Positions 34,920 through 40,179 of a DNA stretch of 64,000 nucleotides are shown here, piece by piece. The translations under genes and the position numbers were made by a program. The stretch lies in contig JAKMXF010000017.1 in assembly GCA_024704765.1 (NCBI GenBank), positions 23,292 through 87,291 on the forward strand, read 5' to 3'. Under the pieces are notes generated by a model. That model made no database searches and had not been told where the DNA came from. It worked only from the letters and a program-made list of their open reading frames with translations. The stretch comes from Oopsacas minuta. Lineage: Eukaryota > Animalia > Porifera. Numbering within the stretch: position 1 is the first letter of the stretch; each line of letters begins with the position of its first letter.

Positions 34920-36079
34920 ATGGCAACAAATCAGCCCATAATTGTACCAGTTAATGAATTGGCACAATTCGATTATGTCGCTACTCAAATCATGAATAAG
35001 TTCGATCTCCTAATTAAGCAGCTGATCGCGAGGAGGGACGCTCTCCTTGGGAAACTCAGAGATATGAAATGGAATATTTATCAAAAGAGAGTACCCGTAA
35101 GGCAGCCATGCAGGAACTGGCCAATACTCAACGACACATGGAGGCGCTAAGTCTGAAAGTTAATGAGAACAAAGATCTCCATCAACAGATCACTGACCTA
35201 TATCAACAGCGCATCAAACAGCTGGAGACTCCCACAAAATTCCAGCAGCCCTTCTTCTCCTGTACGACGCTGTCCCAACTACGAACTCAGATCGCTGAGT
35301 TCGGAGAGATGAAAGAATGGGAGCTAGACTACTCTGAAGAAAAAACCTATCCTAACTGTTGGGAAGGAAGGGTACGGTAATAATGAATTGAATGCTGCAG
35401 GTCTATCTCTAGATGAACCAAATCAGTTAATTTACATAGCTGATTATCATAACAGTCGTATCCAAGTTGTGTCTTTTGAAGGAAAATTCTTGAAAAGATT
35501 TGGACAAGACATACTCGAAGGACCATGGGGAATAGCTGTGGCAGAAGATAACGTCTTCATTACGGACAGAGAACTCCACGCTTTGTTACAGTTCAACAAG
35601 AAGGATTACAAACTAGTGAAGAGGACTGGTAACGAAGAAGCAGGAGATGGAGAGCTAAATGAACCACTTGGACTCTGTGTTCACTACAATGGAGACGTGT
35701 ATATGGCTGATTGTTACAATCACAGAGTTTCTATATTCTCTAAAGCTCTTGAATTTGTTAATTGTTTGGGTACTCAACAGCTACAACATCCTCAGGATGT
35801 TAAAGTTACTCCCACTAGCATTGTAGTGCTAGACTACAGTCCTAATTGTGTACACTTCTACTCGGGAAGTGGACACCTTATAAACTCATGTACTACTTTT
35901 GGGCAGGATGGTGGTGTATCGTCCCTTCTTCTGTAGTTTGGATGTAGCATGGAATATTCTTATTACTGATCTTTCCGTCACAATATTAAGATACTATCTC
36001 CATCAGGAGAGCTATTACACACCATAGGGAGGATAGAAGATGGGAGAGAAGAATTTACAAATCCATATGGTATTAGTAC
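34920..36079 (+). pseudogene. Coiled-coil + NHL-repeat (TRIM-NHL-like C-terminal half) gene, frameshifted and truncated by the RAG1-like transposon
   Basis: MATNQPIIVP..., coiled coil, LIYIADYHNSRIQV, GPWGIAV, EPLGLCV, DVYMADCYNHRV, HPQDVKV; about 4 frameshifts; last repeat 'FTNPYGIST' ends at the CACAGTG end. Confidence 0.85.
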
Positions 36080-39077
36080 CACAGTGGCACGGCATGTGGA
36101 AATAGGTGAAAAAAATATAACTTCAAATTGCTTTATAGTGTTGATATTTGAATTCAGCACCCCCACAAACCTCGGAAAACATTTGACATCTCTACAATAG
36201 ACTTTCCATTTAGCTCCTACGTCTATTCCAATGAAAGCATAATTGAAATTCGAAAGATTGATTTATGGTTTCAATTTTCGGTCATGATGTAATTTTGAAT
36301 AATATGGATTCTCTACGTCAAATAACTGCTATTTATAGTATACCAATCGAAAGCTCTTATGTTGCTGAATAATAAATCACGTTAATCTTGGCTCCAATGA
36401 ACAGATGGAATTTACTATTCTCATTTTAAACAAGCTTGTTCGTACAAGTGCAATAAATAGAAACACGTTTCATTAAAACTCTAGTACTTTTTTTGCCTTC
36501 ACTTGCGGAACTTTCCATTGCACTTTCCTAATAGCTCTTTTCGTCCTCTACAAAATACACTTTAAATTATGGTGTCAGGAAGTGTCAACGATATTTTTTT
36601 TTGCGATTTTAAATATAATCCATTCACAATTATCTAATTTTGGCCCATATAAATCATAAATAATTGTTGTGGTTGTTTATTAGCACATTTTTCATTATGA
36701 ATAACGAAGATGCATACACGTTCTTAACTGCACAAAAGAATAAAACAATCACTTCTCTCGCGTCCTCGTTTATTGTCCTCAATAATTTGGAAGAAACAGA
36801 GCATGATACAGTTCGGAGAAAATTTTCGACCCTCAGAGAAGATAGGAGAGAATACCTGAAACGAGCCGATATAACTACTTGGAATGTGATACCTTTTCAT
36901 ACACCACTTAAACACCCGAGATTGAGTACAGGTTATCAATGCTCAGATGAAGTCATGGTGATAGGGAGTGTTTCTTCTAGCCAATCAACCTCTGTTTTCG
37001 AAGAAGATTTTAGTAAGCCCACCCGTAAGCCTCTGAGGGAATTATCAACTAAAGGTCTTCGCAGCCGATTGTCCTCCTTACTAACACATCTTGAAAAGGT
37101 TGCTGTACAAGAGAATGTTTCCAGTAAAGAACTATCCTGTTACCTGATGATGCTATGTTCACAGACTGAATCCGACTTTACTACTACCAAGTTCTGTAAA
37201 GAAATTATTGCTAAGGGAAGCTTCGGTCCAGTCTGCAATGAACTGACCTCCGATAAAGCTGCGTTCTTGATGGATTCTTTAGAAATTGGAAAGAAGAAAT
37301 ACATCGATTTAAGACGTTTATTGCTTTCAGATGTCCAGCTTCCAGGTTACAATCGATTAGCTACCCATCGATCTCAAATTTGCTTGACTAATGACATCTT
37401 TCAGTTGATCGAGAACATCGGGTAGGCATTGCTGTATCTTACAAAAAGCTTCTGACTCATACAGTAAACAGAATATTGACTGCTTCTGCCAATGAAATTC
37501 CCAGCGCCAGCAATCCTAAAAGGATACGAATTTCAGATGGACTTGACGGTTCTGGCTCTCACCGGGTTTATCAGCAAGCGACTCACCCCAATATTTCAAC
37601 AAAAAGTTTTATTTTATTCGGGTTTAAGGTGATTTCCATATCCGACACCGATAACAAACTGATTTGGAAAAACCCTCTACCAAATTCTCCTTTCTCAATT
37701 AGACCCGTTGCGATACTAGCTCTACAGGAGAACGAAGACAATATTCGATATCTTATGGATACACTAATCAATAAGGAGTCCACAGAGATAACGGTAAAGG
37801 GTTTAGAACTAACAAGCGGATTTTGTGAAGTTGAAATTCAACGTTCACAATTGGATGGCAAAATGGCTAAGATTATTAGTGGAGTTGGGGGTGCATGTTG
37901 CCAGTTCTGTACAGCGACATTCAAACAAATCCATGATCCGGATATCGTAAAAGACGGTTTTCCAATTAATCGATCCATCACAGACCTGAAAGTATTATTT
38001 GATGAAGTTAACGAAGAGGAGTTTCTATCATTATCTTCTGACAACAGATTCAACGTTACACACAGACCAATATCTGACTTAGAAATCATACCCAGTTCGC
38101 CTTTGCATGCATATCTCCGATGTTTTGGCTGGTTTTTACATCTAATTAGCCATTTGCACGCAGGAGTATTTAAGTGGTCACCAACTTCTAAGAGAGTCTC
38201 AGATGCTAAAACTTTCGTTACAAGTTTAATTAAAGACAATCTCAATATGATTATTGACATCCCTTCAACACAAGGTGGCACAACGACTACTGGTAATGTG
38301 GTAAGACGATGCTTGATAAGAAAGGATGACAACGATCAAGATTTCCTCTACTGGGTTTTGACAGTGATCCCGTCTGAGTTCAAGTCCCACATAATTGAAA
38401 TTCACACATGCCTAGGAGCAATCCTACGCGTCTATAATAGCAGCAGAAGAGTGGATACAGAAGAACTAGCGCTTGTTTGCAGTAATATCTACCAGTCAAT
38501 TCTCTGTGCATTTCCTTGGGCTAATGTTTCCCCGACGTTACACAAACTGTTAGCACATGCACCGGAAATCATCTCAACGTTTAATGATGGACATGGGCTA
38601 GAGAACTTATCTGAAGAAGGACTAGAGGCTTCTAACAAATATATTCGGAGATACAGAGATCGTCTTGCTCGCAAGTTTTCATTTGAAGAAAATTTAAAGG
38701 ATGTATTTGTTCGATTGATTTCTCACAGTGATCCCATGCTGTTAATGAATCGCAAGTTTTCTATTCCAAGGCCTCCATCTAGCCAAGGACTTAGAAGTAG
38801 CCAAGATATTTTAGTGAACACCCTTATTCGTGATCATGAAGATCATAATGATGATTAAAAGTAACCTCTCAATCGATTAATAGAAAATTTGGGGAATTTT
38901 CACACCTCAGATAGGTGACAATGACGTCATAACTTTGTCACCTGAAGGGATAGAGAAAAAATGAGTATCCCATTCGATTCATTGGGCTCGAAAACCTATA
39001 TGACAATAATACATTTTGAGGACCTATGTGCCATCAAAATGCCTATTTCCACATTCTGACCATTTCGTGCCACTGTG
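36080..39077 (+). mobile_element. RAG1-like / Transib-superfamily DNA transposon, 2998 bp
   Basis: Ends CACAGTGGCACG (36080-36091) and CGTGCCACTGTG (39066-39077); shared inner block ATGTGGAAATAGG; encodes a RAG1-core-like DDE transposase; no 5-bp TSD (AGTAC vs CCAAG). Confidence 0.9.
36697..38858 (+). CDS. RAG1L: RAG1-like transposase (~720 aa if one missing nucleotide near 37400 is restored); split into two ORFs as assembled
   Basis: NBD-like RKPLRELSTKGLRSRL...KEIIAKG; DDBD-like 'KAAFLMDSLEIGKKKY'; catalytic-like SDGLDG (D600), QLDGK (D708), SEEGLEASNK (E962); Zn ligands CCQFC and HKLLAH; TGNVVRR and C-terminal ARK..DVF.RL..SDP. Confidence 0.88.
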
Positions 39078-40179
39078 CCAAGCCCCCCCTAAAGTTTACT
39101 TAGCCCCTCCTAACACTACGCTATGGCTACGGCCCTGTTTTATACACTATTTTGCTATACAAATGAAATATCTATTTTGTGTATTCATCTTAAATTAAAA
39201 ATATTTGGAATGAACTCATTATCCAACCTCGTATAGTGTATCCATAAACCATATCATGCGTTCCAGATTCCTTCTGTTGGCCACTTTTGAATGGACGTTG
39301 CGATTTCTCGTGAATAAATTAATTAATACATACCAATGCCATGATACTAATACCACCGCTAGACAAATTGGGTGGTTTGTGGAGCTAGTAGTATTGTTGC
39401 AGTTGTCATGCAATGGTGGTCAGGACGGACCTAATGTAGCGACCAAATACAGCAGACATATTCAAGTAAACAATATTAACTTTTATATTAATTATCAATG
39501 ACTTGGATTGTGTATCAGTGATATCTAAGATAGGGGGTTCTAAGCAGCAACCTAGGTTGCTGAGTGCCCTCAAGCTTCATCAACCTATATAGTGACGGAA
39601 ATCATATATAATAAGGGGGGATTTTTATGTACCAATCTAGCTTGCCGGTTAGAAAATTTCTATAAGAGAAAAATGAGTTGTCTAATTCCAGTCACTCGAT
39701 TATCGGGCATTCTGCCAAAGCGGGCAACTTTTGTTTTGTCCGCAAGTGCCCCGATTATCGAGTGCCTAGTGTCTCTACATAATTAATTAGCTGAAAATAT
39801 TCCAAAGCATAATAGGAATGTAACTTAATATGAATTAGTTTGCGTTTCGGATTTACGAATTCCCTAAATAGCTCAAGGCCCTAATATCGTAATAAGTTAT
39901 GGGGCATAGATTTAATATAAATACAAATAGGAACATTACAAAAAACTAACAAACAAACTAAAGAAATACAATACATTTACACAAGGGTGTACGAAATACA
40001 GAAATAGTCTGACAATAAACTGGACAAACTGACACTTTTGAGTAGACAGGCCTAGACCTATGACGCCACAACACTAACTACACTAACTACGGAGGAACAT
40101 TTTTCGAGGAGGAATTGGGAATGGAGAAATGAATGGACACCCACTATCTAAACCTATTACATTGAAGTTACTATTCTAC

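Follow-up and report, generated by a model that had tools for sequence, protein, structure and literature searches.

Positions 36080-39077 of the window (the whole stretch of DNA analysed here, 64,000 nucleotides from the glass sponge Oopsacas minuta) are a copy of a Transib DNA transposon, 2998 bp in length, which encodes a RAG1-like protein and lacks RAG2. Transib is the family from which RAG1, the antibody-gene recombinase, came. The two ends of the element carry the same two conserved blocks, set at unequal distances from each other, and it is this asymmetry, its conservation among sponge Transibs and its possible relation to the 12/23 rule of V(D)J recombination that are considered here.

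The boundaries of the element were set by a DNA search of the whole assembly with both end regions as query. Similarity to about 22 other copies, which together are referred to as family A, opens at 36080 and closes at 39077, and these positions were therefore taken as the true element ends. A single gene lies on the + strand between them; the other open reading frames (ORFs) are of at most 164 amino acids, are located on the opposite strand and overlap the 720-amino-acid frame of this gene. No RAG2-like gene was found in the ORF list of the 2998-bp element, and 3 kb leaves no space for a second gene. All four features that define a Transib were found, i.e., a RAG1-like/Transib transposase, a 5-bp target-site duplication (family-wide), terminal inverted repeats (TIRs) with a CAC heptamer of the recombination signal sequence (RSS) type, and the absence of RAG2L, and the element was filed as a Transib on these grounds. 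RAGL and ProtoRAG elements are recognised by a pair of RAG1L and RAG2L genes between the TIRs; with its single gene and no RAG2L, the element described here is not a RAGL element. It is a recently inserted, now frameshifted copy of a cut-and-paste transposon with a single RAG1-core-like DDE gene and, being frameshifted, the copy is non-autonomous.

Unequal spacing at the two ends of family A

The features of the two ends are as follows.

36080..39077, + strand: whole Transib element of family A, with homology to about 22 genomic copies bounded exactly here
36080..36106, + strand: 5' TIR, short form, 27 nt; the form found at every left end in the genome, in a register common to six families
36080-36086, + strand: heptamer CACAGTG of the 5' TIR
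36080-36091, + strand: terminal 12-nt block of the 5' TIR
36092-36093, + strand: 2-nt spacer GC of the 5' TIR
36094-36106, + strand: inner block of the 5' TIR
36097-36106, + strand: cross-family core TGGAAATAGG of the 5' TIR (nt 18-27)
39042..39077, - strand: 3' TIR, long form, 36 nt; the form found at every right end, in a register common to six families
39071-39077, - strand: heptamer of the 3' TIR
39066-39077, - strand: terminal 12-nt block of the 3' TIR
39055-39065, - strand: 11-nt spacer AAATGGTCAGA of the 3' TIR
39042-39054, - strand: inner block of the 3' TIR
39042-39051, - strand: cross-family core of the 3' TIR (nt 27-36)

The left end (36080-36106) reads CACAGTGGCACG + GC + ATGTGGAAATAGG and the right end, followed inward on the - strand from 39077 to 39042, is CACAGTGGCACG + AAATGGTCAGA + ATGTGGAAATAGG; heptamer and 13-nt block are 7 nt apart on the left and 16 nt apart on the right. 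These bipartite ends had been described in an earlier note on this DNA, and their coordinates and sequences were borne out, and its remark on the lack of resemblance between the inner block and the RSS nonamer ACAAAAACC is correct. The inner block as that note drew it stood in part: the 13-mer is exact at both ends of the window copy, but the unit conserved across families is a 10-mer only and not the whole 13-mer. Both blocks were also recovered by a repeat finder as separate inverted pairs (I4 and I16). Within the window, the terminal 12-mer has two matches, against 0.10 expected, both of which are at the element ends, and the exact 13-mer inner block is found only at these two ends. A chance inverted repeat was excluded by the count of the 12-mer together with the homology among copies, which stops exactly at the ends.

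An exact pattern search of the genome identified 36 ends of family A, including 17 with a 2-nt spacer, 18 with an 11-nt spacer and one with a 10-nt spacer. The ends with a 2-nt spacer are all left ends and those with an 11-nt or 10-nt spacer are all right ends, the 10-nt variant representing a single-base loss at the right end of an older copy. The test set in the earlier note, that left ends consistently have the 2-nt and right ends the 11-nt spacer, therefore holds with this sole exception, and no copy with two short or two long ends was found among the approximately 22 copies of family A. Perfect 5-bp target duplications flank 17 of the 21 copies that have both ends, and two further copies match at 4 of 5 bases. 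The 17 full-length copies show a mean pairwise identity of 97.2%, which suggests that family A was active recently; the window copy is 94.8-99.4% identical to the 16 others. One short and one long end are likewise present in a 379-bp internally deleted derivative of family A, similar to a miniature inverted-repeat transposable element (C356:105587-105956; L018/L053), which has its own 5-bp duplication, CATAT.

Conservation of the offset between Transib families

Because the copies of one family have a common master, the decisive comparison is the one between families. With the transposase as query, the genome yielded 1294 first-look candidates, among them further Transib families at 58% to approximately 40% identity, and the Oopsacas genome contains at least seven Transib families with several hundred ends. 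For a genome of 61 Mb, this number of first-look candidates amounts to an unusual abundance of Transibs. For family B (58% amino acid identity) and family C (55%), the ends were set by pairwise alignment of two copies each. The 5' end of family B is CACAATGGCACG-AC-AGGTGGAAATTGC and its 3' end is CACAGTGGCACG-AAATGACAGTT-TGGTGGAAATAGC, while the corresponding ends of family C are CACAGTGGCACA-CC-CCCTGGAAATTGG and CACAGTGGCACG-AAATGGCTAAA-ACCTGGAAGTAGG. Three additional relatives from other ENA assemblies, L085, L086 and L087 (43%, 42% and 41% identity, respectively), have the same layout as family A. The flanks of L085 and L086 have no close match in the Oopsacas genome, which indicates that these two elements are from other organisms; L087 is from the same ENA assembly as L085. 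Duplications of 5 bp were found in B, C, L085, L086 and L087, those of the three ENA elements being GGTAT, GTCAG and AACTA.

Each of the six families aligns best, left end against right end, when the offset is exactly 9, with 11-14 of 18 positions matching as compared to at most 9 at the other offsets from 0 to 16. In each of them the conserved inner 10-mer, (T/A/G)GG(A/G/T)A(A/G)T(A/T)G(G/C), is located at nt 18-27 in the 5' TIR and at nt 27-36 in the 3' TIR. The heptamer CACAGTG is present in all related families, and within families A-C conservation extends to the first 5 nt past it. Spacers are divergent in sequence between families, and nucleotide matches found by blastn between families A and C and between B and C are confined to the coding region. 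Two other relatives were less informative. L088 (43% identity; ENA ERZ25072730, a 7.1-kb contig at 3x coverage) has a normal 27-nt 5' TIR and no clean target duplication, and was excluded from the family count; from L089 the 3' end alone is present, with an 11-nt spacer and a mutated heptamer.

The layout was then sought across the whole genome with the pattern CACAGTG-N(4-30)-GGDARTWGS, which has 299 matches, as compared to 4 for the reversed control. Three gap sizes contain most of them:

gap of 11 nt, motif ending at nt 27: 118 matches, control 0
gap of 20 nt, motif ending at nt 36: 111 matches, control 0
gap of 21 nt, motif ending at nt 37: 27 matches, control 0

Hence 256 of the 299 sites (86%) fall into three of the 27 possible gap sizes and, among the first 100 matches listed, the remaining sites are mostly 1-nt variants (26 or 35 nt). 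In every pair checked against the search coordinates, the 27-nt end is on the 5' side of the transposase gene; the pairs checked for polarity include C48, C58, C88, C99, C323 and C337 on the + strand and C11, C33 and C330 on the - strand. The ends of two further Oopsacas families, at 45% and 42% identity, were read from these pattern matches. The 37-nt class is represented mainly by the 45% identity family (…GGGCATTTTTGGGGGGTGAAATGGAAATAGG) and by at least one further family, where the offset is 10 bp; examples of elements with a 27-nt 5' TIR and a 37-nt 3' TIR are C99:414299-417274, C323:98550-101530 and C337:128746-131715. It follows that the length of the short end is constant, at 27 nt, and that of the long end is 36 or 37 nt. 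With regard to the 42% identity family, over a dozen copies have uninterrupted 721-amino-acid frames (e.g., C48:13858-15963, C332:79995-82100 and C299:1180021-1182126).

The true left/right asymmetry that the earlier note had proposed, and had likened to the 12/23 RSS rule and to the 27/31 ends of ProtoRAG, is supported by these data, as the 9-bp offset is kept in five other families down to 41% identity and is dominant genome-wide. Comparison between the families indicates that the offset is an inherited property of an entire clade of sponge Transibs that appears to be under selective constraint, and not an accident of the window copy.

Transposase, candidate motif reader and flanks of the window copy

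The transposase of the window copy is encoded in two parts, with the following features.

36697..37425, + strand: first part of the transposase gene, from the ATG at 36697 to a premature stop after the frameshift (from the ORF list), with the N-terminal helical domain and the region resembling the RAG1 nonamer-binding domain (NBD)
37015..37176, + strand: RAG1 NBD-like region, amino acids 107-160 (...PTRKPLRELSTKGLRSRLSSLLTHLEKVAVQEN...), by profile match to 3gna
37476..38858, + strand: second part of the transposase gene, lying in the -1 frame with respect to the first part, with the RNase-H-like DDE core, the zinc-binding CxxC and the C-terminal tail
37545-37547, + strand: codon of catalytic D284
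37854-37856, + strand: codon of catalytic D387
38613-38615, + strand: codon of catalytic E640
38856-38858, + strand: stop codon of the transposase

Alignment to an open-frame copy showed that the window copy is one base short in a T run near 37398, which causes the frameshift; a sister copy (L065:329-2488:-) has an open frame of 720 amino acids. Among solved structures in the PDB, the open-frame protein matches the HzTransib transposase (6pqn) at E 2.5e-26, BbRAG1L (6b40) at E 4.5e-11 and vertebrate RAG1 at approximately 1e-4. The Pfam RAG1 profile gave 24.8 bits with the open-frame protein, just below the 25-bit cut-off, and 24.4 bits with the second part of the window copy. The match to HzTransib begins at residue 185 of the sponge protein, which corresponds to residue 10 of the solved chain. 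In these matches, residues 419-467 align continuously with the zinc-binding region of BbRAG1L and fall between the two stretches matched by HzTransib; they may represent the alpha11-alpha12 region of the zinc-binding domain, retention of which is a Subgroup I feature (Tao et al. 2022). The columns of D284, D387 and E640 are invariant in an alignment of 11 clade members.

The CTT1 (CCGHC) C-terminal tail was found neither in the window family nor in P0009, P0011, P0012, P0018 and P0025, and families B and C also lack it. A CxxCGxxGHxxxxxC zinc knuckle, which is the CCGHC tail known from RAG1L-B, is present in clade members P0024, P0031, P0016, P0020 and P0036 (alignment A1, columns ~725-745), where the window family and several other families show a deletion; the absence of the tail from the window family appears to be a secondary loss.

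When the N-terminal 270 amino acids of 10 clade members were compared with the PDB as a profile, the RAG1 NBD crystal structure (3gna) ranked first, at E 1.2e-4. The alignment pairs the sponge profile …RKxLxELtlKxxRxRLxxLLxxvexlAxxE… with the RAG1 NBD, and R124 and L125 are invariant in the clade alignment. In an AlphaFold2 model of the N-terminal 270 amino acids, the NBD-like region forms three helices, with a predicted local distance difference test (pLDDT) score of approximately 77-80, after a disordered linker. Foldseek ranks RAG1 chains first for this model, although weakly (3gna, TM 0.59 by target, E 5.3). The NBD-like region may accordingly be regarded as a candidate reader of the inner motif. 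Preceding the linker, amino acids 1-65 (36697-36891) form a confidently modelled N-terminal helical domain (pLDDT approximately 87), for which no Pfam family or solved-structure match was found.

No target-site duplication flanks the window copy, the sequence to its left being AGTAC (36075-36079) and that to its right CCAAG. Over 1.18 kb, the left flank shares 91% identity with a paralogous stretch of C321 (L028), and this homology stops at most 1 base from the 5' heptamer; its continuation downstream of the element was sought and not found. On the right, one feature abuts the 3' heptamer:

39078..39137, + strand: right flank, outside the element; last 60 bp of a different multi-copy repeat ending …GGCCCTG

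A rearrangement after insertion, or recombination between copies, would explain the missing duplication, as these flanks suggest. Just upstream of the element and inside the region duplicated on C321 is an ORF at 35388-35936, the translation of which resembles NHL repeats by eye.

Interpretation of the spacing and related systems

The spacing between heptamer and inner motif is probably functionally constrained (we put the probability at roughly 80%). The inner motif may be a binding site of the transposase, in which case the unequal spacing would give the two ends different identities and the productive complex would consist of one of each. In the mechanism that we consider most likely, the two heptamers would be held by the catalytic core of a transposase dimer and the inner motifs would be read by the N-terminal RAG1 NBD-like domain, while the spacing difference of about one helical turn would make the transpososome assemble on one 5' and one 3' end; the spacing asymmetry would then be the transposon counterpart of the 12/23 rule. 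A strict pairing rule in these RAG2-less sponge Transibs, by which cleavage would require one short and one long end with an NBD-like dimer enforcing this, can be proposed only tentatively. What favours it is analogy with the RAG1 NBD dimer, which, according to the summary in PMC10462144, pivots on a flexible linker, reaches nonamers at unequal distances and enforces the 12/23 rule, and with ProtoRAG, whose activity is higher when its TIRs form an asymmetric 5'/3' pair than when they form a symmetric one (PMC8289069).

Several points weigh against this interpretation. Uniformity within a family proves nothing alone, given that its copies descend from one master. At least two families have an offset of 10 bp and not 9, and any constraint is therefore on approximate spacing. 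The 3' end of L088 is ambiguous, with either a CACCGTG that has the motif 5 nt too near or a CACGGAC that has it 1 nt too far. As to the proposed reader, the NBD profile match is modest (24.6 bits), the AlphaFold2 model of the N-terminus has a mean pLDDT of only 63.7, a Foldseek search of the PDB with the model of the N-terminal 270 amino acids returned nothing at E<=0.001, and family A does not have the GRPR motif, with TRKP instead. Family A also lacks the CCGHC C-terminal tail, which binds the TIRs in BbRAG1L. In addition, nt 13-18 of the 3' TIR are semi-conserved, as AAATGG in A, C and the 42% family, AAATGA in B and AAAAGG in L085 (nt 10-18 in the window are 39060-39068, - strand). Finally, the argument for a putative preference for a 5'/3' pair is drawn from sequence conservation between families.

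One alternative is that a single 9-bp indel occurred in the ancestor of the clade and was neutral, only the heptamer-proximal block being needed and the ends being interchangeable. HzTransib works with TIRs that are described as symmetric (PMC8289069), and the difference between 9 and 10 bp among families implies some tolerance. Such a frozen accident is nevertheless unlikely, as indels would be expected in neutral sequence of such age, whereas the inner motif and its exact position have been kept at 41-58% transposase identity despite diverged spacers. The confinement of the A/C and B/C nucleotide matches to the coding region, and the concentration of 86% of the 299 sites in three of 27 gap sizes, likewise speak against it.

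The semi-conservation of nt 13-18 suggests another explanation, since it raises the possibility that the 3' "spacer" is a second site. The 3' end would then have one more unit of approximately 9 bp, a degenerate copy of the motif (AAATGG, nt 13-18) bound by an extra transposase subunit or a host factor, and the identity of an end would be marked by the number of sites, as at Mu or P-element ends, and not by helical spacing. In line with this, nt 10-18 of the 3' TIR are ACGAAATGG in A and C, ACGAAATGA in B, GCAAAATGG in the 42% family and TCAAAAGGC in L085, all of which seem to resemble the inner motif GGAAATAGG, and the 5' TIRs have no such unit except in the 42% family, where the 3' end consists of three 9-mers (GCAAAATGG / CCATAATGG / GGAAATAGG) as compared to two at the 5' end. 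The similarity is short and A/T-rich, and neither the L087 family nor the 45% family has a recognisable proximal unit; we consider both an extra site and end identity set by site number improbable. The fallback offered in the earlier note, that an ancestor had the 11-nt spacer at both ends and the window copy privately lost 9 nt on the left, has nothing in its favour beyond the view from a single copy and is refuted, because the spacer is of 2 nt, and never of 11 nt, at each of the 17 exact left ends found genome-wide and five other families also have a short 5' end.

Asymmetric bipartite ends are not unique to the sponge elements. Kapitonov & Jurka (2005) reported several insect Transib families with RSS12-like 5' and RSS23-like 3' TIRs (PMC1131882), namely Transib5 of D. 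melanogaster and Transib2_AG and TransibN1-N3_AG of A. gambiae (Fig. 4C therein). These elements, which belong to the same superfamily, resemble the sponge element in their CAC-heptamer ends, in the 5-bp duplication and in having the short end 5' and the long end 3', and their second conserved block is at comparable distances from the tip, approximately 28 nt at the 5' end and in the high 30s at the 3' end. They differ in that the sponge inner block is TGGAAATAGG and not an A-rich nonamer of the AAAAAAATC type and in that the sponge offset is 9-10 bp as opposed to approximately 11 bp; with a 9-nt inner unit the sponge layout would be 12/21-22. The host, a glass sponge, and the 5 conserved nt past the heptamer in families A-C are further differences.

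According to Tao et al. (2022), all Subgroup I Transibs have asymmetric TIRs, an NBD-equivalent is present in Transibs, and the ends of AanRAGL consist of 13-bp and 10-bp elements with 4/13-bp spacers, i.e., a 9-bp offset (PMC9435367). The sponge elements have the same 9-bp offset, with 2/11 between 12-bp and 10-13-bp elements. Like Subgroup I Transibs and AanRAGL, the sponge clade has a putative NBD-equivalent, and several sister families have the CTT1 tail CxxCGxxGHxxxxxC; unlike Subgroup I, families A, B and C have no CCGHC tail and, unlike AanRAGL, they have no RAG2L gene. The element is probably a Subgroup I-type Transib, a placement made from features only, with the asymmetric ends present and the CTT1 tail lacking in family A. 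Martin et al. (2023) described a 10-bp asymmetry in PflRAGL-A and argued for an ancestral element equipped with asymmetric TIRs, an NBD and a CCGHC tail (PMC10462144), and the sponge clade fits this ancestral picture.

ProtoRAG of amphioxus (27/31 TIRs) and PflRAGL-A have, like the sponge elements, a heptamer and a distal element at unequal distances as well as the 5-bp duplication; unlike them, both encode RAG2L. The offset of ProtoRAG is 4 bp, with TR5 as the distal element, and in PflRAGL-A, in contrast to the sponge elements, the block is A/T-rich and nonamer-like and the NBD is of the GRPR/K type. The vertebrate 12/23 RSS share with the sponge ends an identical heptamer, CACAGTG, a bipartite structure and a difference of about one helical turn between partners. 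The sponge 5' TIR, at 27-28 nt, is comparable to the 12RSS of 28 nt, and the long partner is of 36-37 nt as compared to 39. The sponge ends are not 12/23 RSS in the strict sense (CACAGTG, nonamer ACAAAAACC, spacers of 12+/-1 and 23+/-1), as their inner motif, TGGAAATAGG, is unrelated to the nonamer and their spacers are 12 and 21-22; moreover, RSS flank gene segments, whereas the sponge sequences are transposon ends with target duplications. HzTransib of Helicoverpa zea, the best solved-structure match of the sponge transposase, would be expected to share the CAC ends and the chemistry that yields the 5-bp duplication, and differs from the sponge element in its TIRs, described as symmetric (PMC8289069). 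No paper that mentions Transib together with Oopsacas was found in a literature search.

How the 12/23 rule arose is a question of long standing in research on the evolution of V(D)J recombination. In the published view, the ancestral Transib/RAGL element was already asymmetric, a view based on few Transib and RAGL families (PMC1131882, PMC9435367, PMC10462144), and the only structurally studied Transib has ends that are described as symmetric (PMC8289069). The sponge Transib is a further example of an asymmetric-end type already described, and what it adds is a populous natural data set; the current picture is not changed by it. The invariant 27-nt 5' TIR, the 36-37-nt 3' TIR, the NBD-like region and the absence of RAG2 do add weight to the view that the asymmetry of spacing is ancient and maintained by selection. 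If the pairing rule were true, a restriction of the 12/23 type would have existed before RAG2 was captured and would occur in an animal lineage that was among the earliest to branch off, and the young family A, whose copies reach 99.4% identity to the window copy and include one with an open 720-amino-acid frame, would be a tractable system for how spacing asymmetry is read.

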